Shown here piece by piece: positions 1 through 13,127 of a stretch of DNA of 13,127 nt. Source of the DNA: Selaginella moellendorffii (taxonomy: Eukaryota; Plantae; Lycopodiophyta); contig NW_003314558.1 of assembly GCF_000143415.4 (NCBI RefSeq), forward strand, positions 1 to 13,127, read 5' to 3'. The position numbers and the translations under genes were made by a program. Below the pieces are notes generated by a model, which did no database searches, was not told where the DNA came from, and saw only the letters and a list, made by a program, of their open reading frames with translations. Numbering within the stretch: the stretch's first letter is position 1; each line of letters starts with the position of its first letter.

Positions 1-168
1 TCTCGGGTTGTCATGCCAATGTATTTCCTTTCCCTTTAGTGAATTTTTCATTATAAATTTTCTCTAGTTTTTCCTCTTATCTGAGATTGCCATAGCTGAT
101 CTCTAGCATTCTTGAGTTCCACTGGATCAAGCAATGTGGAGTGCTTTTGGCTAATTGCAATTCCAAAA
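1..168 (+). mobile_element. 3' end of the preceding Penelope-like element copy (3' half of the hammerhead plus 3' tail)
   Basis: Matches 11390-11557 with one substitution seen. It starts at the UC of the GUC cleavage triplet and ends at a telomeric tract. Confidence 0.85.
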
Positions 169-196
169 CCCTAAACCCTAAACCCTAAACCCTAAA
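169..196 (+). repeat. Plant telomeric repeat tract (CCCTAAA)4
   Basis: Four perfect CCCTAAA units. Confidence 0.95.
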
Positions 197-614
197 AACT
201 GGACACATGAATGCTACAACCCTTTCCAACACCTTATGGACAAACCTTCAAGGAAACAAGGAACCAACTTAAGCTTAGCATAATGGACCACCATCGAGAA
301 TCCAGTCAAAGCTACTACAATGCTACTTCATGCAAGTAGACTAGCTTCACTATCAACCACTTTGGGGTTGATCATCATTTAACTAAGCAACTTCGTAAAC
401 ACATTGCTCATTATCACATGGATATGATACAAAATCACAATGACTTGATCATCAATTGAGCAACACCACGAGCAACACCCATGTCATTACTTCAAAGGTT
501 TATGTGAGCATCAAGTGCTAACTCAGTTCGGCAAAATGCAACATAAATGCCACACTCCACCAATAGAGATTTACAACACTGAACACCACCAACTTCAGCT
601 CCAGGACTGTTCCA

Positions 615-723
615 AGTGTCCGTAAAGACTAGTCGACAAGTAACTTTCGATACCCGAAGTCACATTCGTGACACTTGACTTCGGGTATCGAAAGTTACCT
701 GTCGACCAGTCCTTACGGACACT
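615..723. repeat. Fold-back inverted repeat, 48-bp arms and 13-nt loop, made of head-to-head LTR 5' ends
   Basis: 615-662 agtgtccgtaaagac...cccgaagtca versus 676-723 tgacttcggg...ggacact, 3 mismatches. 615-675 is also a direct repeat of 3613-3673. Confidence 0.9.
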
Positions 724-1350
724 CTTACCTTACTGCTATGATGGCAGGAGGTCTGTACTGCTGGATCCCTTTAGTAGCCCCTCTTGTGCTAGTGGAGTTA
801 ACTGGGCATTTCGAGTGTACTTAGACCGGACGAGCATAAGGACGGAATTCCTACGTGTTATTAGCTAAGCATACTTAGCCCGGTAAGGAGTTCCCGTCTC
901 GTTATGTCTTGCACTGGCTAGTGACAAGAACCCTCGCGTATTGAGATTAGTCCCTCAATATCGCTACATAATAGCTTACCGTGTCTGCCAAACACCCTCG
1001 CTATCATGCCCTTTGTGTTAGTTTCATTTCGGTCCCAAATGCTATTTATGGAAAGTGTCCAGATTTGGTCATTTGGCATATCTACGGAATGTAGAGATCG
1101 GTCTGAACACAATGGTGTTCGTCCCATGTCCAAATTCGCAATCTAAGGACATTCCATATTTAGTAAGTTTCGAGCTTGTCCTAGAGACTAACTCCTAATA
1201 CTAAAGGAGGCTTGGGGTGGAAGCCCAAAGCGTGTGTTCCTCAAGGGGGGGGGTTGTGGGGGGTTCCAAATGTATAGTAGGGATAGCGGGTAGGTCGGGC
1301 ATGGCCGACCAACCTAAGGCATAGTCTAGCTCCTACTTGCGTGCCTGTCC
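676..1350 (+). mobile_element. LTR-derived segment (+ copy, missing the first ~11 nt); left arm of an ~680-bp inverted repeat with 2971-3660
   Basis: Highly similar reverse complement of 2971-3660, whose end carries the TG start and polypurine tract (PPT). The LTR may extend beyond 1350. Confidence 0.7.
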
Positions 1351-1829
1351 ATTCAAATGTAGCACATGTGGTTTTGACCCTTTATCCTATGGTGATTTAC
1401 CATAGGATAACACCACAAAACGGAACCAAAACCCTTTTTGTGCCACGTGATAGATGCCACATGTCACATGCCACATGTCCATGCCACGTGTCCATAGGAA
1501 CCCGAGGTTCAAGGCCTTGGGCCACTGAACGAAGAAACGGTGCCAAACTCCTAAGCGTGAAGCCAAAGAGTGATAGAACCGAACCACGGAGCAACTCCCG
1601 AGCATACAGCCCAAGGAGTGAAGGGACAGGAGCCCAGAGCGACTTGGAATAGTCCTAGAGCAACCAGCATCCCAATGCCAGGACCAGCATGCAAAACGGA
1701 GCCAAACAGAGTCTAGCGCTATTTCGGCATACCGGTGGCCTAACTGTAAGGAACCAACTCGCCGAGGTGTCGTAGGCTAAAGGAACCCCGAAAGCATGAC
1801 CAAAATGACAAAGAGTTCATCGGATGGGA

Positions 1830-2105
1830 CCAAGTCGAAGATCGAGTCCAAGACCGACTCTAGGACCGAGTTCGAGATAGAGTCCGGAATCGAGTCTGAG
1901 ACCGACTCGGGGACCGAGTTCGAGTCCGAGTTCGAGACCGAGTTCGAGACGGAGTCCGAGATCCGAAATCGGGTCCGAGACCGAGTCCGAGGTCGAGTCC
2001 GAGGTCGGGTCCGAGATTGGGTCCGAGATCGAGTCCGTGATCGAGTCCGAACCCGAATCCGAAGTCGGATCCGAAATCGGGTCCGAGATCGAGCCAGAGA
2101 CTAAG
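1830..2105 (+). repeat. Degenerate hexamer tandem repeat (CCGAG core: GAGTCC/GAGACC/GAGTTC)
   Basis: Dense 6-bp periodicity; atccgaaatcgggtccgaga occurs twice (about 1961 and 2069). Gives spurious (ES/ET)n and (RV/RD)n ORFs. Confidence 0.9.
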
Positions 2106-2970
2106 TCCAAATACTAATACGGGTCAAGGGGTGAAAGCCCAAAGCGTGCGTCTCCCAGGGGGGGGGGGCTGCAGGGGGTTCCAAAAGTATAGTAGGGATA
2201 GTGAGGTCCAGGAACCAGTTTTGAAGGGACTCTCCAGTTGGGCTTCCAAACCGACTTGAGGTTGGGACTGGGACTAAGGGGCCTTGGGTGGGAGTGAGCA
2301 TGGACTTGGCTGGTGCCGGAGGGGCCATCCAAGGAAGTGCTCAAGAGCAGCTCCCACTCCCGAAAGGGAAACCGATTGCGGTGCTCCCGGCTCATGTGGA
2401 GTGGTGCCCCACTTGAGTACCATGCGGCTCATTGGTCCTCGCCCTTCCTAGGGGCTTGGGCCTTCCTTCGGGACGGAAGTGGGGGGCGAGAGGTACCCAT
2501 ACCGGGCCGTTAGGCCACGGTGTTTCGCCCCGGCGTCCCGAAGCAAGTGTTGCACTCAAGACTTGGGATTTAGAGGGTCCCATGATCAAGTCTTGTGGTA
2601 CCAAGGGATGTTAGGAACCTGGAAGCTTGGTGTGCTTGGCTGCTTGTGCTTGCGGGGAGTGTAGCCGAACCTTAAGTCCAGTCTAACCCGGGGAGGGGGA
2701 TTGGGAGTGATTTGGGAATCCGTGGAAGGATGGCTAACACTCCGTTGCCCGTGCAGTGAGTAGCTGAAACCAAGTAGGAGTTGGTACCATAGGCGAGAAC
2801 CTTGGCAAGGGAACTTAGCAAAAGCCAAGGCAGTGTTGGACGGATAGACGAGGTAAGCTGGCAAATTGGAAAGGAAAAATTTGTGGCTTACACTAACGCG
2901 AGGATATGGGTACTCCACCAACTAGCATGGAATGGAACTTGGGCTTAGACCCAAGCCGGACACAGAACAA

Positions 2971-3671
2971 GGACAGGCACGCAAGCGGGAACTAGACTAT
3001 GCCTCAGGTTGGTCAACCATGCCCGACCTACCCACTATCCCTACTATACATTTGGAACCCCCCACAGCCCCCCCCCCCCCCCCCCCCCCCCCTTGAGGAA
3101 CACACGCTTTGGGCTTTCACCCCAAGCCTCCCTTAGTATCAGGAGTTAGTCTCTGGGACAAGCTCGAAACTTACTAAATATGGAATGTCCCTAGATTGTG
3201 AATTTAGACACGGGACGAACACCATTGTGTTCAGACCGATCTCTACATTCCATAGATATGCCAAATGAGCAAATCTGGACACTTTCCATAAATAGCATTT
3301 AGGACTGAAATGAGACTAACACAAAGGGCATGATAGCGAGGGTGTTTGGCAAACACGGTAAGCTATCATGTAGCGATATTGAGGGACCAATCTCAATACG
3401 CGAGGGTTCTTGTCACTAGCTAGTGCAAGACATAACGAGACGGGAACTCCTTACCGGGCTAAGTATGCTTAGCTAATAACACGTAGGAATTCCGTCCTTA
3501 TGCTCGTCCGGTCTAAGTACACTCAAAATGCCCAGTTAACTCCACTAGCACAAGACAGACTGATAAAGGGTCCAGCAATACCGATCTCCTACCATCGTGG
3601 TAGTAAGGTAAGAGTGTCCGTAAGGACTGGTCGACAGGTAACTTTCGATACCCGAAGTCACATTCGCGACA
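2971..3671 (-). mobile_element. 5' portion of a 3' LTR of an LTR retrotransposon on the minus strand
   Basis: The minus strand reads purine tract then TGTCGCGAATGTGACTTCGGG starting at 3671. The distal LTR boundary was not determined. Confidence 0.65.
3068..3092 (+). repeat. Poly-C homopolymer (25 nt)
   Basis: Counted directly; the homologous positions are G9 (1245-1253) and G11 (2158-2168). Confidence 0.9.
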
Positions 3672-3684
3672 CTCTCCCCCCCCT
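3672..3684 (-). other. Polypurine tract preceding the minus-strand LTR
   Basis: ctctcccccccct on + is an all-purine tract on -, directly abutting TGT. Confidence 0.65.
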
Positions 3685-5547
3685 AGGGAAGATCGACATC
3701 CTCGTCGATGCATACTCGAGTCTAGAATACCACCAAGGAAACAACTCCAGAAAAAGTTCACGGTACTCACACTATGTGAGAAATGCACCAACTTAAATGA
3801 GTTAGGAGGCAACCTCTTTGTCTAACGCGGATGCGCTACCAGCTTAGACACCTTCCGGCCGTCGCCGACAAGGAAATGACCAACGGAGTCAGCCACCCTT
3901 GCTGCTCTGGGAGTCACCCAGCTTACAAAAGTGTGATACGCCCCTGCCCGCAAGGACATAGAGAGAGAAGCCAAAGGCCCCAACCCTCCTAAGCAAAGAA
4001 ACCAAACCCGTCGGTAAGGTTTAGATAGACTACTGTAAACAGACAGTTAGAGTTGTTTACATGGTCACGCCCTTTTAACGAAATAAGGAACATCGACAGA
4101 GAGGCGGGTTATGTGACCAGTCTACAGTAGCTACCCCATGACTAGAGATTTCAACATGCACACAAAGTGCCGAAGCCAGTCTGCTTATACTAGCCCAAAC
4201 TCAAAGATCAATAAATGGACAATATCAAAGTCATAGACAATGATATCTTAGAGTCTTAATAATCAATGAATATATCTTAGATTAGAACACAAAAGTATTC
4301 CAAGTAAGTTATCATCCGATAAACTAGTAGTAGAGTATAAGAACCACCAAGATCATCATAAGTGGTAAACATAGGATTCACCATCAAACAAAATTCAATA
4401 GCAAGTATATCATCAAGTAAACTCAATGATAAAGTTTAACTATTAAAGATTGCAGACAGAATGCCAAACAACTTACGAAAGATAACTCAAAGAACACAAA
4501 GTATCATTGACTGGCAAGCAAAATGCTCGCGAATGTATCACCTAAAGGAAATAACATCCCAATGGTTCAGAACTAACTCGAGCAACAATCAACAAAACAG
4601 AATGAATGTGGCAAGGCCAACAAACACTCGTTTATGCCAACTATCACGCTAGCTAATCCAAATAGATCCCAGTCAACAACACCAAGGAACTCAAGTTGTG
4701 TAAGTAAGTGTCAGCAACATTCTATTGATGTCTCAAACCCAAGAGACCAATCCAGAGCAAACCACAAAGAACATGTGGTATTGCGAAAAGCCAAAAGCCA
4801 TCAAAGAGAATAACTAACTATCACGAAAGATCATCAATCATCCCATCAATAAAGAGATGCATAATCATCGTATAAGAAAGAATCCACTACCCCAAAGAAT
4901 AGCGAATCATTCTATATCAACAATAATCAGGCAAAACTTTTTGATAAGGATAATCAACTATCCTAGATCACAGTCAATCATCACTAATGATTGCCAGATG
5001 CAAATACTAACTTCAATAGCGAAGCTAATGAGCGAAAATGCCTTCCCCAACAACTTCTAACCAATGGTCCACAAGCATGAAAGTTCAAGGAACCAAAAGC
5101 TCGAAGAAGCTTATAGCTAAGTCTTGCCTAATAATGATCACGAGTCTTGCATGAACTAACATTAATGCTAAAAAGAAATCATGGTACAACCCACAATATC
5201 CTCTTCAACACTTCCATAAGCTAAACTTCATAATGCCAAAGCTAATGAAGAGCAGATTTGCATCAATCCAAAAGCCAAGCATAATGAAACTATGCTCAAC
5301 AAGTGACCACTAAACGATCTTCCATGAATCCATCTATAGCAAGACGTAACTCACTTCATAACAAGCACAAGAAGAAACATTAATGATCGATATAGTCCAA
5401 CTCAAATCCAACAAGGATTCAAATGTTCCAATATCAATCACTAACTCTTCTGCTTGGAGAGTTAGCATAGTCCACGACTGAATCACTTTTCAAGGAAAAG
5501 TCAAAACTTAACCCCTACTAAATAATCTTGTCTAGAACACAACTAAG

Positions 5548-6493
5548 TTCCCTACTCCGAAGTGTGTGAATGATGTGCAGCGCTTCTTGGGCAAGGTGCA
5601 GTATCTCGGGCGTTTTGTGGATCATCTTTTTGATCGCACTGCACCATTGCGAGCGTTGCTGAAGTTATCAACATCATCTTTCATCTGGTCTCCGGATTGT
5701 GAGCGGGCGTTTGGGGATCTCAAAAAGTTATTGACAACTCCTCCGGTTTTGGCATATCCTGACTACACTCGACCTTTTATTTTGCGCGTGGATGCTTCTG
5801 ACATTGGTCTTGGAGGTGTGTTAATGCAAGAGAGCTCGAGTGTGCATAGTCAGTGCCATCCCATTACATATATAAGCCGTACATTACAACCAGCGGAGAT
5901 GAACTACTCCACGACAAAGAAGGAGTGTTTAGCAGCAGTTTGGGGTTTCGAGAAACTTCATGCATATCTACATGGTTCTCGGACATTACTTGAAGGTGAC
6001 CATGCTGCTGTTACTTCATTATTAAAGCGAAAGAACCTGGTTGGTCGTACTGCTCGGTGGGCTTTGAAGCTTCAGATATATGATTTTGATGTTGTTCACC
6101 GCCCAGGGAGTTCTATGGCTGATGCTGATGCCCTTTCTCGAGCTCCTCTTCCTTCTTCATTCTCTTCTCATGTTTCTGACGAGCCTGTCGTTCCAGCATC
6201 TGTGGATTTTCTAGACAAGGATTCTGTGCCGTCGGCGGTTATTATACTTGACGTTCAGTGTCCACAAGGTGCAGAGCAAGATCTATCGTCGCTTGATGAG
6301 GTTCGCAAGGCTCAAAAGATTGAGCCATGGATTCGAAGGCTTCGAGATGGGTTTCAGAATCTTGCATCACTTGCTGATGACTTGCCTTTCCAGCATTTAC
6401 ATTCTCAATATTGTCTTGAAGGTGGCCTTCTTTATTTTGTGGGGACAGATCCTAATGATCATTTACGGCTGGTGGTGCCTTCTATTTTTATTC
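5548..6493 (+). pseudogene. pol: Ty3/gypsy pol fragment: RT C-terminus/connection, RNase H and linker
   Basis: FPTPKCVNDVQRFLG, PPVLAYPDY, LRVDAS..GLGGVL, NYSTTKKECLA, EGDH, RWALKLQ, ADALSR. The RT catalytic core is absent. Confidence 0.92.
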
Positions 6494-6850
6494 ATGCCAG
6501 AGATTGTGCATGTGCAGCGGTTGAAATGCTTCATACAAAGGGATCAGGAGCAGTTAATACCATCTACAGATTCGCCGATGCCTCCTCCTGATGTTCCTCC
6601 AGATCCCGGCCCGTCTACAAGAGAACCCTGATGGTCTTCCATTATCCCGAGAGGGGGGGATGATGTGAGGGCCAAGTGTACGGTTACGATGCCGTATACT
6701 AATATTAGCGTAGTGGGATTTTGGTAGCCATTGGATTGGTTTCAATTCGGACCACTCGCTTCTGTATATAAGCTAGGGTTTTTGGGCTAATTGAGATGCA
6801 CATTTCTATATTTGATCATTTACGGCTGGTGGTGCCTTTTATTTTTATTC
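6456..6850 (+). repeat. 38-bp direct repeat (6456-6493 and 6813-6850) flanking the displaced segment
   Basis: tgatcatttacggctggtggtgcctt(c/t)tatttttattc, 1 mismatch. Confidence 0.92.
6494..6812 (+). mobile_element. Displaced 3' end of a gypsy element: integrase C-terminus, PPT and start of the 3' LTR
   Basis: PEIVHVQRLK...REP* (stop 6629-6631), PPT gagaggggggga 6649-6660, TG start at 6661 or 6664, TATATAA 6765-6771. Confidence 0.75.
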
Positions 6851-7312
6851 TGCGGTTTCTCCATGCCTACCATGATTCTCCTGTTCTAGGTGGGCATATG
6901 GGATATCGTCGTGTAATTGAGAAGCTACGCAGGTCTTTCTATTGGCCGGAGATGCGACGTGATATTATCCGGTATGTGCGTAGCTGCGTTTGGTGCCAAG
7001 CTCGTAATACTCCCCCTCGGGCTGCGGAAGGACGGTTGGAGTCAATTGCAGTTTCCCGTCCGTTTGAGTTGGTGGTGTTTGATCTTATGGGACCTTTTCC
7101 ACGGTCAACTGCTAGCAATGAGTATGTTATTATTGCTTCTGACTATTTGACTCGTTGGGTGGAAGTTGGTGCTCTTGCTAGTGCCTCTGCAACTGCTGTT
7201 GGATACTTCCTCCTCAATCGAGTGGTGTTCCAGCATTCTTGTCCAGAGCGGATTCTTTTGGATAATGGTCCCGCATTTATGGCTGAGGCGTTTCATGTTT
7301 TGACGTCTCGGT
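6813..7312 (+). pseudogene. pol: Ty3/gypsy integrase fragment (HHCC zinc finger plus first two Asp of DDE), 3'-truncated
   Basis: HDSPVLGGHMG, FYWPEM, YVRSCVWCQ, PFELVVFDLMGP, DYLTRW, DNGPAF. It breaks off before the catalytic Glu. Confidence 0.92.
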
Positions 7313-7667
7313 CATGCCGATGGTGATGGATGACGAGGTCAAGGGTAGGATTCGAGTAATACGACAGGCTCTGAAGCAATCGGTGGTGGTTCAATCGTTG
7401 GCTGCACTAGAGGGGGAAGGCATTCTTAGATGGTGGCGACAGCAGCTCATCGAGGATCTGGATTGGGACCCCACAGCATGGAAACGAGGAGCGAGGAGCT
7501 TCTTCTCCTTCGGCGTCAAGGAAGCAAGGGATGGTCTCTTGACCAGCAGGGAGGAGGCCCGAGGGGAGATCCCCAAGCTCTGGAAGAAATGGATCGAGCA
7601 AGGAGTTGAAGCAAATCAGGTGGTGGGCAACACGCTTGCGTTCTGGAAACTACCGGTACAGGAGAAA
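7313..7667 (+). pseudogene. Probable non-LTR (L1-like LINE) ORF2 fragment running into the start of a zf-RVT-type region
   Basis: Trp-rich open frame with FSFGVKEARDGL...LWKKW...FWKLPVQEK, resembling the FSVKSAY...W..W...P.K pattern of plant LINE ORF2. Cut by telomeric repeats. Recognised by eye only. Confidence 0.5.
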
Positions 7668-7685
7668 CCCCTAAACCCTAAAACC
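7665..7685 (+). repeat. Short telomeric tract (2 CCCTAAA units plus partial units)
   Basis: aaacccctaaaccctaaaacc at the junction between the LINE-like and gypsy pieces. Confidence 0.85.
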
Positions 7686-7973
7686 GTTTTGTGGATCATC
7701 TTTTTGATCGCACTGCACCATTGCGAGCGTTGCTGAAGTTATCAACATCATCTTTCATCTGGTCTCCGGATTGTGAGCGGGCGTTTGGGGATCTCAAAAA
7801 GTTATTGACAACTCCTCCGGTTTTGGCATATCCTGACTACACTCGACCTTTTATTTTGCGCGTGGATGCTTCTGACATTGGTCTTGGAGGTGTGTTAATG
7901 CAAGAGAGCTCGAGTGTGCATAGTCAGTGCCATCCCATTACATATATAAGCCGTACATTACAACCAGCGGAGA
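7685..7973 (+). repeat. 289-bp duplicate of gypsy pol 5611-5899
   Basis: cgttttgtggatcatc...ccagcggaga in both places, no differences seen; same translation DHLFDRTAPL...LQPAE. Confidence 0.95.
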
Positions 7974-7982
7974 CCCGGTTTA

Positions 7983-8138
7983 CCCTAAACCCTAAACCCT
8001 AAATCGCAGGATTGCAGCACTGCGGGGTGTCTTTGACCCTAAATGCCTAAACGACCCTAAACGCCTAAACGTGCCTAAATCCTAAACCCTAAAACCTAAA
8101 CCCTAAACCCTAAACCCTAAAACCCTAAACCCTAAACC
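7983..8138 (+). repeat. Interrupted telomeric tract capping the 5'-truncated PLE
   Basis: (CCCTAAA)3 at 7983-8003, a 33-nt non-telomeric spacer at 8004-8036, variant units (TGCCTAAA, CGACCCTAAA, CGCCTAAA, CGTGCCTAAA, TCCTAAA), then mostly perfect units to 8136. Confidence 0.95.
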
Positions 8139-8627
8139 AGTGGTGAACGTGACGTTACCCATGGACGGCAGGGAAACAAGCAGGGGCGGAATGTGGTTAC
8201 TGGGACTCCTCCCACCCATTCCGATGCCCCGGGTTTTTCTTCAAGGGGTCCCTTGCACCGGCAATCTCTAACCGTGCTTGGTTCCCAGCCAGCCATGACT
8301 GGCAGAGCTGGCCAACGCCAGTCTCGAGGAAACGGTCGACCCCCACGGTCCCAACCGAACTGGCCAAGCGGCCGAGGGCGCCAGACTACACCACGACCTC
8401 CTCCAGCAGCCCAACAACACCAGCCAACTCAGAACCAGAAACCACCTTCACCTCCCAGAGGACAAGAGATGCAGCCCTCACAGCACCACAACAACACCCC
8501 ACTCCACGAACGAACCCAACGCTATGGCTTGGGAAGAAACTCGCCTCCACAGCAACACCCGCACTCTCAGGTTACGGCAGTGCCTGTGGACAGAAAAGGC
8601 AAGGCAAAAGTTTCTGGCTACCTTTGA
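8139..8627 (+). CDS. C-terminal remnant of PLE ORF1 (Q/P/R/G-rich, low complexity), 5'-truncated
   Basis: The frame is open from the telomeric tract (last stop TAA 8133-8135) to TGA 8625-8627, and it overlaps the RT frame, which is -1 relative to it. Confidence 0.6.
   Translation, partial: SGERDVTHGRQGNKQGRNVVTGTPPTHSDAPGFSSRGPLHRQSLTVLGSQPAMTGRAGQRQSRGNGRPPRSQPNWPSGRGRQTTPRPPPAAQQHQPTQNQKPPSPPRGQEMQPSQHHNNTPLHERTQRYGLGRNSPPQQHPHSQVTAVPVDRKGKAKVSGYL
8171..8230 (+). promoter_or_regulatory. Candidate programmed -1 ribosomal frameshift signal (slippery G GGA AAC, 5-nt spacer, stem-loop)
   Basis: The heptamer 8171-8177 is phased to ORF1. Stem GGGGC/GCCCC plus GGAAUG/CAUUCC plus inner UGGGA/UCCCA spans 8183-8230. 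The -1 frame has no stop from 8153 to the RT stop. Confidence 0.7.
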
Positions 8628-10471
8628 TTGCCCCGCATGAAGCTTTACTTCATTTTGCTGGCAATCAAAAAGTTTCCCAGCTAGAAAATAGAGTGGATAT
8701 TGGTGCTGTTCACAATTTGTCTTCTTGCATGTTGAGTGCCGCTGAAAAGCGCCTCCTTGCTCTTGGGCTCTCATTCATTCCTAATCCAGTGCCTCTCACG
8801 GCCAAAAAGATTATGGAATGCTTAGATGACTTTCAACGCTCAGTCTGTCTTCGTCATTCGTTTAAGGACAGCAACAGTCTTATACCAGAGTTTCGGGTTC
8901 CCAACCCAAACTTTGATCCTCCCCCTGCTTCCTGGCACATGGAGTCACGAGTTGCCCGCATTCGAGAGCACCTTCTCCAACGTCTTTCCTGTTGTAAAAG
9001 ACCTCGATCTTTTCTAAGAGGATGGAGACGTGATGCAGTCCTTGCGCTGCGACACGTTCATAGTATTGTGATTAAGCCAGCCGACAAAAACCTCGGCGTA
9101 GTTGTTCTGGACCGCACGTGGTACATTCAAGAGGCTATGCGCCAACTCAATGATCCTCTTGTCTACAAGAGAGTTGAGTCGATTCCACATCAACCCATGC
9201 ATGAGCGCCTCCTCGAACTTCTCCTGAAGTATAAATCTTGCTCGTGGCTGGACAAGAACACAGCCAAGTACCTCACCACTTTGCCCTCACCTCCACGTAA
9301 AGCTTGTTTGTTGTATTTTCTTCCAAAAATACATAAGCAGCCAATTCGTGGGAGACCAATTGCTAGCTATGTTGGCTACATTTGGGAGCCACTTGCAAAA
9401 TGGCTTCACCGCCAACTTTTTGGCATTCTCCTCCAACAGGAAACCTTTCTTATGGACTCCCACACCCTCCTTCATGATCTTCATAAACAACAGCTCCCAA
9501 AAGACTGCCTCCTCTTCACTTTTGATGACGAGTCGCTCTACCCGAGCATTCCCACACGTGAAGGGCTCTATCGCCTCCATAAATTTGTATATACAAATTT
9601 TGGAGATTCAATGCAAGCACGCTTTATCATGGCTGCTGCAGGACTCATCCTTGAACACAATTATGTTGAGTTCGATGGGAGTTATTTCCTTCAAATCCGA
9701 GGCACTGCTATGGGGTCAAACTTTGCTGTGGTGTATGCTTGCCTTTTTCTTTGCTCCCTCGAGGACGAGTTTAAGGCCACCTCTCCTAAATGGCCAATAT
9801 ATCTTAAGAGATATATTGACGATGGTGTCGGAATTTGGGATGGATCAAAAGAGAGCTTGGAATCTTGGTTGGCTAGCTATGGAAGCCTCTGCAATTCTAT
9901 AAAGATCACCTCAGTGATCTCATTTGAATCTATGGATATTCTAGACATCCATTTTTTCAAAGGCCCACGCTTTGAGAAATGCAGGTGCCTAGACTCCACC
10001 ACCTTTCAAAAGCCACTAAATGCATACCAATATCTTCCATGGAACTCAACGCATCCTCGACACCAAAAGATTGCCTTCATTCGTGCTGAACTTCGGCGTT
10101 ACCTCCTACGAGAGAGTAACCCTGAGAGCTTCTGTGCAATTCGCAAGCTTTTCTATACTCGTCTCCGTGCACGTGGATACCCAAGAGCCTTCCTTATTGA
10201 AGCTTTCCGGACAATCCATTATACGGACCGAGATAATGTGCTCTACTCTCCATCACGCAAATCCAGTAGCAATAGTCTACAGGCCCCCCTCATTTTCAAG
10301 CTGCCTTATACTCTCCATAGTGCAGCACTTGATGTGGGGAACACCCTAAACCCTAAACAGGTGATTTCTGAAGTTCCATCAGACTCACTCCCCAGAGTGA
10401 TCACATGCTGGACACGGTCCCCAAACCTTGCTTCCCACTTGGTTTCAGCGAGACTCCCACCATATGGATAA
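8624..10471 (+). CDS. Penelope-like element reverse transcriptase lacking GIY-YIG endonuclease (frame open from 8153; probably made as an ORF1-RT frameshift fusion)
   Basis: VHNLS..L...E..LL.LGLSFIP, IVIKPADKNLGVVV, LYFLPKIHK..IRGRPI, FDDESLYPSIP, QIRGTAMGS, RYIDD (YIDD 9812-9823), thumb KP...QYLPWNSTHP, RLRARGYP; ends NLASHLVSARLPPYG*. Confidence 0.93.
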   Translation: MIAPHEALLHFAGNQKVSQLENRVDIGAVHNLSSCMLSAAEKRLLALGLSFIPNPVPLTAKKIMECLDDFQRSVCLRHSFKDSNSLIPEFRVPNPNFDPPPASWHMESRVARIREHLLQRLSCCKRPRSFLRGWRRDAVLALRHVHSIVIKPADKNLGVVVLDRTWYIQEAMRQLNDPLVYKRVESIPHQPMHERLLELLLKYKSCSWLDKNTAKYLTTLPSPPRKACLLYFLPKIHKQPIRGRPIASYVGYIWEPLAKWLHRQLFGILLQQETFLMDSHTLLHDLHKQQLPKDCLLFTFDDESLYPSIPTREGLYRLHKFVYTNFGDSMQARFIMAAAGLILEHNYVEFDGSYFLQIRGTAMGSNFAVVYACLFLCSLEDEFKATSPKWPIYLKRYIDDGVGIWDGSKESLESWLASYGSLCNSIKITSVISFESMDILDIHFFKGPRFEKCRCLDSTTFQKPLNAYQYLPWNSTHPRHQKIAFIRAELRRYLLRESNPESFCAIRKLFYTRLRARGYPRAFLIEAFRTIHYTDRDNVLYSPSRKSSSNSLQAPLIFKLPYTLHSAALDVGNTLNPKQVISEVPSDSLPRVITCWTRSPNLASHLVSARLPPYG

Positions 10472-10493
10472 GCTACCTTGGACTTGCCCAAAG

Positions 10494-10812
10494 CTACCTC
10501 TTACAAACTCGGAGTGGAATATTCCTGGAATATTCTGATGCTTTGAAATATTTTTTTTGAGGTTAGCTATTAAACATGATGAGGAACAATTAGGACGTGC
10601 TGCATGGCTGATATCCATCACCATCACCGTTCACAATATACTGCTATGAATAACCTACCTCTTGCAAAGTCGGAGTGGAATATTCCTGAAATATTCTGAT
10701 GCTTTGAAATAACTTTTGAGGTTGGCTATTAAAAATGATAAGGAACAATTAGGACGTGCTGCATGGCTGATATCCATCACCATCACCGTTCACAATATAC
10801 TGCTATGAATAA
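10494..10812 (+). repeat. Tandem duplication of ~160 bp in the PLE 3' UTR
   Basis: 10494-10653 and 10655-10812: ctacctctt.caaa.tcggagtggaatattcc...tgctatgaataa twice. Confidence 0.92.
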
Positions 10813-10853
10813 GCTTCACACCACTAAGCTTGTTTATTTCCTATTTCAGTCTT

Positions 10854-11105
10854 TGAAATTTTCAACTTTTTTGAAATTTCAATTGATTATTATATCTTGT
10901 GCCTTGCACAGTGATATCATTGAAGTTTACATCTATTCTCTACAAACCAAATTTGAGGGAAATATACTGAGCTAATTAAAATCACCACCACCTCTTCTCT
11001 GAAATTTTTCTGAAATTTCAAGGGACTATCACATCTTGTGCCTTGCACAAAGATGTCATTAAAACTCATATTTTATTTTCTACAAACCAAAATTTGTAGA
11101 AAATA
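10854..11105 (+). repeat. Older diverged duplication of ~110 bp in the 3' UTR
   Basis: tgaaatttcaa...atcttgtgccttgcaca...tctacaaaccaaa at about 10854-10964 and 11000-11105. Confidence 0.75.
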
Positions 11106-11121
11106 AACTCATAATAATAGC

Positions 11122-11157
11122 AATCAATACCACCATCATAATCAATACCACCATCAT
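11122..11157 (+). repeat. 18-bp perfect tandem duplication
   Basis: aatcaataccaccatcat twice. Confidence 0.9.
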
Positions 11158-11342
11158 AATATATAAGATAAGTGGCTAGTGACAACCAAGTCTGTGAGGC
11201 TGTTCCTCCAAGCTTGCCTGCTCACACTCCACCACAAGATCTTTGAAGTTCTAAAACAGTTGGATATTTTCAAAGCTTCTTGAATATTCTTAAGGCATCT
11301 GGGTAAAAATAGAGGAAAAGAGGGGCTAGGTTAGACCATTTT

Positions 11343-11404
11343 CATGGCGACTACACCCGGCTGATGAGTCCCAAAAAGGACGAAACCGGTCTCGGGTTGT
11401 CATG
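11343..11404 (+). ncRNA. Type I hammerhead ribozyme (minimal PLE type, palindromic stem III)
   Basis: Stem I ACCCGG/UCGGGU extended by CAUGGCG/UGUCAUG; CUGAUGA 11361-11367; stem II GUCC-caaaaa-GGAC; GAAA 11382-11385; stem III ACCGGU; cleavage triplet GUC 11389-11391. Confidence 0.93.
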
Positions 11405-13127
11405 CCAATGTATTTCCTTTCCCTTTAGTGAATTTTTCATTATAAAGTTTCTCTAGTTTTTCCTCTTATCTGAGATTGCCATAGCTGATCTCTAGCATTC
11501 TTGAGTTCCACTGGATCAAGCAATGTGGAGTGCTTTTGGCTAATTGCAATTCCAAAACCCTAAACCCTAAACCCTAAACCGGTAAACCCTAAACCCTAAA
11601 CCTAAAACCCTAAACCCTAAACCCTAAAAACTGGACACATGAATGCTACAACCCTTTCCAACACCTTATGGACAAACCTTCAAGGAAACAAGGAACCAAC
11701 TTAAGCTTAGCATAATGGACCACCATCGAGAATCCAGTCAAAGCTACTACAATGCTACTTCATGCAAGTAGACTAGCTTCACTATCAACCACTTTGGGGT
11801 TGATCATCATTTAACTAAGCAACTTCGTAAACACATTGCTCATTATCACATGGATATGATACAAAATCACAATGACTTGATCATCAATTGAGCAACACCA
11901 CGAGCAACACCCATGTCATTACTTCAAAGGTTTATGTGAGCATCAAGTGCTAACTCAGTTCGGCAAAATGCAACATAAATGCCACACTCCACCAATAGAG
12001 ATTTACAACACTGAACACCACCAACTTCAGCTCCAGGACTGTTCCAAGTGTCCGTAAAGACTAGTCGACAAGTAACTTTCGATACCCGAAGTCACATTCG
12101 TGACACTTGACTTCGGGTATCGAAAGTTACCTGTCGACCAGTCCTTACGGACACTCTTACCTTACTGCTATGATGGCAGGAGGTCTGTACTGCTGGATCC
12201 CTTTAGTAGCCCCTCTTGTGCTAGTGGAGTTAACTGGGCATTTCGAGTGTACTTAGACCGGACGAGCATAAGGACGGAATTCCTACGTGTTATTAGCTAA
12301 GCATACTTAGCCCGGTAAGGAGTTCCCGTCTCGTTATGTCTTGCACTGGCTAGTGACAAGAACCCTCGCGTATTGAGATTAGTCCCTCAATATCGCTACA
12401 TAATAGCTTACCGTGTCTGCCAAACACCCTCGCTATCATGCCCTTTGTGTTAGTTTCATTTCGGTCCCAAATGCTATTTATGGAAAGTGTCCAGATTTGG
12501 TCATTTGGCATATCTACGGAATGTAGAGATCGGTCTGAACACAATGGTGTTCGTCCCATGTCCAAATTCGCAATCTAAGGACATTCCATATTTAGTAAGT
12601 TTCGAGCTTGTCCTAGAGACTAACTCCTAATACTAAAGGAGGCTTGGGGTGGAAGCCCAAAGCGTGTGTTCCTCAAGGGGGGGGGTTTGTGGGGGGTTCC
12701 AAATGTATAGTAGGGATAGCGGGTAGGTCGGGCATGGCCGACCAACCTAAGGCATAGTCTAGCTCCTACTTGCGTGCCTGTCCATTCAAATGTAGCACAT
12801 GTGGTTTTGACCCTTTATCCTATGGTGATTTACCATAGGATAACACCACAAAACGGAACCAAAACCCTTTTTGTGCCACGTGATAGATGCCACATGTCAC
12901 ATGCCACATGTCCATGCCACGTGTCCATAGGAACCCGAGGTTCAAGGCCTTGGGCCACTGAACGAAGAAACGGTGCCAAACTCCTAAGCGTGAAGCCAAA
13001 GAGTGATAGAACTGACCACGGAGCACTCCCGAGCATACAGCCCAAGGAGTGAAGGGACAGGAGCCCAGAGCGACTTGGAATAGTCCTAGAGCAACCAGCA
13101 TCCCAATGCCAGGACCAGCATGCAAAA
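11390..13127 (+). repeat. Copy 2 of the long direct repeat (matches 1-1696), including the LTR fold-back at about 12047-12155
   Basis: Near-identical sequence and duplicated ORF-track translations (668/12100, 918/12350, 1341/12774). Confidence 0.97.
11558..11628 (+). repeat. Telomeric tract of 10 units including variants CCGGTAAA and CCTAAAA
   Basis: 71 bp, versus 28 bp at the homologous site 169-196. Confidence 0.95.

Follow-up and report, generated by a model that had tools for sequence, protein, structure and literature searches.

A 5′-truncated, endonuclease-deficient Penelope-like element among telomeric tracts on a Selaginella moellendorffii scaffold whose ends probably overlap

Endonuclease (EN)-deficient Penelope-like elements (PLEs) are the retroelements most closely related to telomerase, and Selaginella moellendorffii is their standard plant example. 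Here we describe a 13,127-bp stretch of the S. moellendorffii genome (the window), which is the entire scaffold GL377862.1 (range 1–13127) of the v1 assembly (GCA_000143415.2) and is gapless, containing no N. The scaffold probably carries a 5′-truncated copy of the EN-deficient, Coprina-type PLE already known from this species, with the repeat of its left end at its right end reflecting scaffold-end overlap. A preliminary description had instead read the window as an 11.4-kb hammerhead-to-hammerhead retro-unit made up of the PLE and foreign cargo. That unit does not survive comparison with other loci: the mobile unit, seen in three copies, is the PLE bounded by telomeric tracts, and the 11.4 kb are what the overlap of the scaffold ends leaves between them.

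EN-deficient PLEs are 4–6 kb in length with two open reading frames (ORFs), are known in plants from S. moellendorffii, and attach to G-rich overhangs through reverse-complement telomeric repeats that lie beside a hammerhead (PMC8557442, PMC6431247, PMC12477314). Their presence at S. moellendorffii telomeres goes back to Gladyshev and Arkhipova (2007), as cited in PMC8557442 and PMC12477314, and their hammerheads, which are of canonical type I and lie in terminal repeats, were described by Cervera and de la Pena (2014; PMC4209133). For comparison we used two other loci with the window's reverse transcriptase (RT), namely L001 from scaffold GL377752.1 and L003, the terminal 21.7 kb of the 658-kb scaffold GL377664.1, numbered from the scaffold end inwards. 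A third locus, L004, is internal to the 829-kb scaffold GL377652.1 and holds another copy of a dispersed repeat, E, that flanks the PLE in the window.

Results

An intact PLE reverse transcriptase without an endonuclease

The PLE and the tracts that bound it are as follows:

8091–8138, plus strand: telomeric tract capping the PLE 5′ end (repeat search, copy comparison)
8139–11554, plus strand: 5′-truncated EN-deficient PLE, 97–98% identical to the L001 and L003 copies
8193–8627, plus strand: ORF1 remnant, the last 144 codons of the 902-codon ORF1 in L001
8624–10471, plus strand: intact RT ORF, 580 amino acids (aa) from the ATG at 8729
10494–10812, plus strand: PLE 3′ untranslated region (UTR) with 159-nt tandem repeats
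11342–11416, plus strand: type I hammerhead motif (Rfam HH9, 45.9 bits, E 2.8e-9)
11417–11554, plus strand: PLE tail after the hammerhead
11555–11628, plus strand: C-strand telomeric tract of 10.4 repeats, including variant units, at the PLE 3′ end (repeat search)

The RT is 98% identical to two annotated S. moellendorffii proteins, one of which is XP_024523476.1, and has the PLE-type motifs IKPADKNLG (DKG-type), GTAMG and RYIDD. A homologue search found 949 sequences. Relatives number in the hundreds across conifers, Ginkgo, Closterium, fungi and metagenomes; among named proteins the nearest come from conifers, Ginkgo, Closterium and Puccinia, and no rotifer protein is among the best 120 of the 949 matches. 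A sequence search of the PDB with the RT gave no matches. Over 541 residues the RT is 33% identical to P0080, a relative with both RVT_1 and GIY-YIG domains, and the window ORF stops about 70 aa past the aligned region, before the GIY-YIG part. Pfam detected GIY-YIG in the control P0080 (1.2e-5) and found none in the RT ORF or in any plus-strand frame of 10300–11560, which bears out the earlier identification of an endonuclease-less Penelope RT. All three genomic RT copies are intact, with dN/dS of 0.31–0.35.

In L001, ORF1 is 902 aa long and overlaps the RT ORF; its Pfam matches are weak, to helical domains. Because the L001 copy reads into this ORF, the window PLE is recognised as 5′-truncated, so that the ORF1/RT pair described previously holds for the intact RT ORF but not for "ORF1", of which only the last 144 of 902 codons are present. 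The 5′ ends of the window and L003 copies are both telomere-capped and lie about 19 nt apart, and L001 continues upstream into ORF1. Both capped ends fall inside ORF1 (window 8139, L003 ~9366; the equivalent in L001 is ~9390–9409). Two independent ends so close together suggest that a 5′ end is favoured at this point, whether because an RT-only RNA starts internally or because the RT meets a strong stop.

At their 3′ ends the window and L003 copies run from the hammerhead through a 138-nt tail into a telomeric tract, past which the two sequences diverge. The 3′ UTR of the L001 PLE is joined via an 8-nt filler, GACCACTA, to the tail of a 1.5-kb hammerhead element described below (L001 12112–12121), and the L001 PLE consequently has no hammerhead of its own. 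This junction was considered as a hammerhead-defined 5′ end and rejected, as it lies 37 nt past the cleavage site and contains the filler. In the same locus a stretch of about 2 kb beyond the first hammerhead has a second, 98% identical copy past the PLE (4671–6627 versus 12121–14071).

Taken with its flanking telomeric tracts, the PLE (window 8053/8137–11623) is 97–98% identical to L001 and L003. The window and these two loci have in common the PLE with its tracts, a 54-nt hammerhead core and a 1148-nt module, and nothing else. These alignments define the family unit as an element of about 6 kb with two ORFs and with telomeric tracts as its borders, at full length in L001.

Two further features recur in the element. 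Two perfect telomeric repeats lie within the 3′ part of the RT ORF in three of three copies (window 10344–10357, L001 11616–11629, L003 11579–11592). A palindrome, GGAATATTCC, is common to the 159-nt repeats in the 3′ UTR of the PLE and to all internal repeats of the 1.5-kb element (window 10516 and 10677; L001 4229, 11788 and 11947; L003 646, 954, 1260, 7434, 7742, 8048, 11751 and 11910). It is often doubled, giving an nGAAnnTTCn pattern four times over, like a heat-shock element, and may act in both elements as a promoter or binding site.

Telomeric tracts of one polarity

The telomeric tracts reported earlier for the window were confirmed, seven in all and every one on the plus strand. Tracts of (CCCTAAA)n occur at 166–196, 7669–7682, 7982–8003, 8035–8138, 10344–10357 and 11555–11628, and the C-strand plant telomeric repeat gives 18 matches in the window, against 0.01 expected by chance. 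In L003 the first 363 nt are (CCCTAAA)n at the true end of the 658-kb scaffold, and this is the true terminal telomere; the elements of L003 have the same polarity relative to the telomere as in the window.

The hammerhead ribozyme

A full hammerhead had been placed at 11343–11404, and the Rfam match agrees with it. The catalytic core (CUGAUGA...GAAA) and C17 are intact and cleavage is predicted between 11391 and 11392, after C11391, as had been claimed. The HH9 score is below the gathering score of 52, a deficit arising from the missing loop 3. Helix I comprises 6 bp plus, further out, 5 bp containing a 5-nt bulge; helix II has 4 bp; and helix III is reduced to one A-U pair, with palindromic CCGG as its loop. 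This is the architecture of the "canonical" metazoan-like type I form, in which an unstable helix III blocks efficient cleavage by a single copy and two ribozyme copies are needed (PMC4209133). Fold prediction gives −12.5 kcal/mol for the active monomer fold versus a minimum free energy of −23.3 kcal/mol, a gap of about 11 kcal/mol.

The 54-nt core is identical in five copies. These five hammerheads, found in 56 kb of sequence, are all on the plus strand and all complete and uncut, and each is followed by about 125–140 nt and then by telomeric or degenerate telomeric repeats. It follows that the RNAs that were copied had not been cleaved at this site. Cleavage would in fact remove the telomere-complementary 3′ tail needed for priming. 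All 16 hammerhead pairs form, with one compensatory pair between the PLE and the 1.5-kb element; covariation support is not significant with three distinct sequences, 156 of 500 shuffles reaching the observed value.

The terminal repeat and the 11.4-kb period

Three features make up the repeated ends, together with the 3′ tract at 11555–11628:

1–165, plus strand: left-copy PLE 3′ tail, equal to 11390–11554 with one substitution and 96% identical to the L003 PLE tail
166–196, plus strand: left-copy C-strand telomeric tract, 4.4 × CCCTAAA, 43 nt shorter than 11555–11628
11629–13127, plus strand: second copy of 197–1696, running into the scaffold end (repeat alignment)

That the sequence after the hammerhead repeats the start of the window was correctly noted: 1–1696 recurs at 11390–13127 with two substitutions and four indels. 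The indels are the 43-nt difference in telomeric tract length and three of 1 nt, two of which fall within about 115 nt of the right scaffold end. In the record the copies are separated by a period of 11,389 nt before the telomeric tract and 11,432 nt after it. Since the window is a complete scaffold, positions 1 and 13127 are assembly edges and not biological boundaries, and since the 1.7-kb repeat runs into both of them, its extent, phase and copy number are undefined from the window. The period appears in hammerhead-to-hammerhead phase because the scaffold edge sets it there.

The claim of a hammerhead 3′ half at position 1 holds in part. The left copy does begin with the last 27 nt of the motif (U16.1, C17 and the 3′ strands of helix I), but it has no catalytic core and begins at the edge of the scaffold, not at a boundary of the element. 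Positions 1 and 2 are the pre-cleavage U16.1 and C17, and the scaffold end is therefore not a cleavage product. The proposed release of an 11,389-nt RNA by cleavage after C2 and C11391 accordingly finds no support, as there is only one complete hammerhead in the window and all five genomic copies are uncut.

The flanking "cargo"

Between the left telomeric tract and the tract that caps the PLE lie the following:

197–614, plus strand: A/C-rich non-coding fragment of dispersed repeat E (208–588 is 88.8% identical to L004 1926–1544)
615–3673, no strand assigned: inverted-repeat structure of repeat E, collinear with L004 6720–5623 except for an inserted module
1745–2892, plus strand: the 1148-nt module, with a 12-nt tandem array at 1839–2093, 97–98% identical to L001 and L003
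3674–5560, plus strand: A-rich non-coding part of repeat E (2893–5546 is 88.9% identical to L004 6375–3734)
5561–7320, plus strand: broken Ty3/gypsy pol fragment with RNase H, integrase zinc finger and integrase core (Pfam)
7320–7668, plus strand: long interspersed nuclear element (LINE, non-LTR) ORF2 fragment, sense, directly joined to gypsy (protein similarity)
7669–7682, plus strand: short telomeric tract of two repeats (repeat search)
7683–7973, plus strand: 289-nt gypsy RNase H scrap, 100% identical to 5611–5899
7974–8003, plus strand: variant repeat, then three telomeric repeats (repeat search)
8004–8090, plus strand: 3′ fragment of the 1.5-kb non-coding hammerhead element together with the degenerate telomeric repeats that belong to it

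This flank (197–8138) had been described as about 8 kb of foreign retroelement debris. That is right for the gypsy and LINE pieces, with about 2.4 kb of recognisable retroelement coding sequence, but the remaining 5.4 kb are a non-coding dispersed repeat, 197–5546, which recurs at the internal L004 locus at 83–89% identity and has no ORF of note (none above 67 aa in 3674–5560). The arms of its inverted repeat (676–1350 and 2971–3660) are about 690 nt long and 92–95% complementary, and a palindrome at 615–723, containing a 48-nt hairpin, forms the outer left end. At L004, sequences related to these arms are in direct orientation.

The order of segments at L004 is window 1358–1744, 2893–5546, a further 1.8 kb of A-rich repeat and then 208–588, and the homology ends at window 5546. 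From this order, the telomeric tract at 166–196 marks a healed break inside repeat E, the 1148-nt module is a separate insertion, and the junction of the repeat with gypsy at 5546–5565 is a novel join. We considered whether the 1.8 kb missing between 5546 and 208 might be an insertion at L004 and rejected this, as its composition matches the repeat itself. Three junctions are named for the window: that between the telomeric tract and AAACTGGACACATG, the repeat/gypsy junction (5546–5575) and the gypsy/LINE junction (7306–7320).

Other copies of the 1148-nt module are at L001 3273–2127 (minus strand) and L003 14176–15322, and at L004 the repeat that surrounds it in the window has no such module. 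It lies near the PLE in three of three telomere-associated loci and is probably a small mobile or subtelomeric repeat.

The gypsy fragment is in sense orientation, has an internal duplication with 357-nt spacing, and matches RT_RNaseH_2 (1.5e-34), Integrase_H2C2 (2.1e-19) and rve (6.6e-5). The LINE fragment is 67–69% identical to residues 465–589 of S. moellendorffii XP_024517766.1 (RVT_1 and zf-RVT). The 289-nt gypsy scrap has telomeric repeats on both sides and an identical larger piece 2 kb away, and resembles a piece of heterologous RNA that was reverse-transcribed onto a chromosome end. Every recognisable retroelement scrap in the window is in sense orientation on the plus strand. Among the cargo ORFs (197–8138) Pfam found no domain beyond the broken gypsy and LINE pieces, and there are no intact accessory ORFs. 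This cargo is absent beside the PLE at both of the other PLE loci, so that the expected cargo-plus-PLE unit was not found again: L001 and L003 share with the window the PLE, the hammerhead core and the 1148-nt module only.

Rfam matches to MIR2871, sR46, MIR156 and 5S-like families scored far under the gathering thresholds and were treated as chance or repeat hairpins. At L001 two 5S-rRNA-like sequences (19286–19374 and 19686–19774, minus strand) lie about 400 nt apart, each with an internal deletion and 33–34 bits, just short of the gathering score of 38.

A 1.5-kb non-coding hammerhead element

The fragment at 8004–8090 is 88–89% identical to L003 1802–1867 and 8590–8718, which belong to a 1.5-kb element with copies at L003 364–1867 and 7138–8655 and at L001 3267–4783. 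The element has no ORF above 175 aa, internal repeats of about 306 nt and degenerate telomeric repeats at its end, and it shares its 54-nt hammerhead core with the PLE. At L003 the two copies are 99.5% identical, and one of them sits immediately beneath the terminal telomere. We regard the element as a candidate for a non-autonomous partner of the EN-deficient PLE; it would be a retrozyme-like plant element that carries a type I hammerhead.

Discussion

The preliminary description is upheld in part: an endonuclease-less PLE RT, a hammerhead and telomeric tracts of a single polarity do occur together. The anatomy of the window is consistent with the mechanism that the literature gives for EN-deficient PLEs. 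The 3′ end of the PLE RNA would consist of the hammerhead fold, the tail of about 140 nt and the C-strand telomeric repeats, and these repeats would anneal to the G-rich overhang of a chromosome, whose 3′ end the RT would then extend, with synthesis often stopping short and telomerase re-capping the new end. Read from right (proximal) to left (distal), the window would record several such additions of one polarity: a telomere-healed break in the dispersed repeat, the PLE, the 3′ scrap of the 1.5-kb element and the 289-nt gypsy scrap, with a telomeric tract between each successive event and the LINE/gypsy/dispersed-repeat mosaic distal to them. The 11.4-kb period would come either from a very recent duplication of the PLE with its flank, most simply at the DNA level, or from the merging of haplotypes or copies in the 2010 Sanger assembly. 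Between recent DNA duplication and assembly collapse the choice is equally open; jointly they have a good claim to be the explanation. There is no sign of an 11.4-kb mobile unit whose ends are set by cleavage at hammerheads.

Several observations pull away from a truncated PLE on a scaffold with overlapping ends. The scaffold has no terminal telomeric tract and may not lie at a chromosome end. It starts 2 nt before the predicted cleavage site, and a random end would fall inside the 75-nt motif with a probability of only about 0.7%; the assembler probably stopped in the invariant 54-nt core of the hammerhead copies, where an overlap assembler is likely to halt. Two near-identical copies with the same junction of PLE tail, telomeric tract and flank would also fit a recent event in which the PLE and its flank were truly duplicated together, as the preliminary description had in part proposed; such a duplication may well exist, although the window cannot show it. 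Finally, the uniform sense orientation of the scraps hints at RNA-templated assembly rather than DNA rearrangement.

An assembly artefact pure and simple is a possibility to be taken seriously, if a somewhat doubtful one. Each haplotype would then hold one junction of PLE tail, telomere and flank, and reads from the second haplotype, or from a near-identical PLE end, would have been placed at the opposite contig end. The scaffold is small, coincides with the window, and its repeat reaches both edges; the v1 assembly included both haplotypes and contains duplicate or redundant small scaffolds (PMC3680112), and whole-genome shotgun assemblies are known to be troubled by PLE arrays (PMC8557442). 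The differences between the copies are of allelic size, two of the three 1-nt indels lie close to the right end, and PLE copies of 97–99% identity exist that could seed misjoins. On the other hand each Sanger read is placed once, so that the tract and substitution differences mean that two distinct sequences exist, and a contig that wraps onto itself is also expected from a true tandem.

Duplication through RNA but without cleavage seems unlikely. Here a read-through transcript starting in or upstream of the PLE, and spanning the uncut hammerhead, the tail, the telomeric tract and about 5.4 kb of flank, would have been copied back by the PLE RT, which would have jumped from LINE and gypsy RNA pieces. 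The LINE, gypsy, gypsy-scrap, 1.5-kb-element and PLE fragments are indeed all sense on the plus strand, although the argument draws on few independent fragments and such agreement would arise by chance about once in eight cases. The repeat/gypsy (5546–5565) and gypsy/LINE (7306–7320) junctions are abrupt and without telomeric repeats, where separate events are divided by tracts, but illegitimate DNA recombination also produces abrupt junctions. The complete identity of the gypsy scrap with the larger gypsy piece and the shrinkage of the tract from 10.4 to 4.4 repeats between copies, as from slippage, would suit an RNA intermediate; against it, the window PLE lacks most of ORF1 and any known promoter. 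That the PLE and some 8 kb of flank were duplicated at a chromosome end through RNA, whether by read-through with LINE/gypsy template jumps or, in an extreme form, by a hammerhead-processed circular RNA on which rolling-circle synthesis was primed at the telomeric tract within it, is quite improbable even with the two forms taken together.

The model of the preliminary description, in which double hammerhead cleavage gives an 11,389-nt RNA, possibly circular as in retrozymes, that propagates as a terminon-like unit, is very hard to sustain. Its period equals the hammerhead-to-hammerhead distance by construction, the position of the scaffold start speaks for it, and telomeres could in principle be extended by rolling-circle copying of a circular RNA that contains a C-strand tract. 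With a single complete hammerhead, however, and a scaffold that opens on the two bases preceding the cut, the double cleavage has no counterpart in the window; the five uncut genomic hammerheads lead into tails and telomeric repeats, and a cleaved linear RNA would have no telomere-complementary 3′ end. The monomer, moreover, disfavours the active fold, and this type of hammerhead is reported to be dimer-dependent (PMC4209133); nor does the cargo accompany the PLE elsewhere or contain accessory ORFs. As matters stand, the supposed 11.4-kb unit between hammerheads owes its appearance to the points at which the 2010 scaffold starts and stops.

With the window read as a truncated PLE on a scaffold with overlapping ends, its main value lies in the mosaic delimited by telomeric tracts and in the possible non-autonomous hammerhead partner. 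The scaffold would display the piecewise building of a chromosome end, with telomeric tracts between the PLE, the non-autonomous hammerhead element and gypsy scraps. If the duplication of the PLE and its flank were real and RNA-mediated, such RTs could capture and amplify unrelated sequence at plant telomeres, which would be a plant analogue of terminon growth and of the capture of host sequence by a telomere-attaching RT.

Comparison with known systems

The Drosophila telomeric elements HeT-A and TART resemble the window in their head-to-tail terminal additions of one polarity with variable 5′ truncation. They differ in that their RT is of the non-LTR class and that telomerase, telomeric repeats between units and a ribozyme are all lacking.

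Retrozymes are known in two kinds, a plant LTR type with type III hammerheads and a metazoan non-LTR type with type I. They too tie a hammerhead to a retroelement, possibly with dependence on two ribozyme copies, and the 1.5-kb non-coding hammerhead element of L001 and L003 resembles a non-autonomous partner of this sort. Retrozyme monomers, however, are non-coding, lie between two hammerheads and measure well below 1.5 kb, whereas the window spans 11.4 kb with an RT gene and one complete hammerhead. The window locus is not a retrozyme.

The terminons of bdelloid rotifers (Arkhipova et al., 2017, as summarised in PMC6431247) come closer. In that summary they share with the window a telomere-attached EN-deficient PLE RT, a hammerhead followed 3′ by reverse-complement telomeric repeats, capped 5′-truncated copies, and head-to-tail or interspersed arrays with foreign DNA between units. 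As summarised there, however, terminons have Athena RTs, which are described as rotifer-specific (PMC8557442), many intact co-oriented accessory ORFs, and units of up to 40 kb that form recurring families. In the window the extra DNA is a non-coding repeat with broken LINE and gypsy pieces that do not recur with the PLE, and the telomeric repeats begin about 140 nt after the hammerhead (the 138-nt spacer at 11416–11555) instead of adjoining it. The suggestion of a plant terminon-like system was therefore not supported, as intact accessory ORFs were not found in the cargo and the composite unit does not recur at L001 or L003.

The EN-deficient PLEs of the Coprina group match the window most fully. 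They share with it the species, a PLE RT lacking GIY-YIG, an ORF1 upstream of it where the copy is full-length, a 3′ type I hammerhead, C-strand repeats at the 3′ end and telomere-capped 5′ truncations, and one copy, in L003, lies under a true terminal telomere. Nothing essential differs, the window copy being 5′-truncated, and the label Coprina-type, set from these shared features and not from an RT phylogeny, seems apt. The window element thus belongs to the published EN-deficient PLE family of S. moellendorffii, the core of which was already known.

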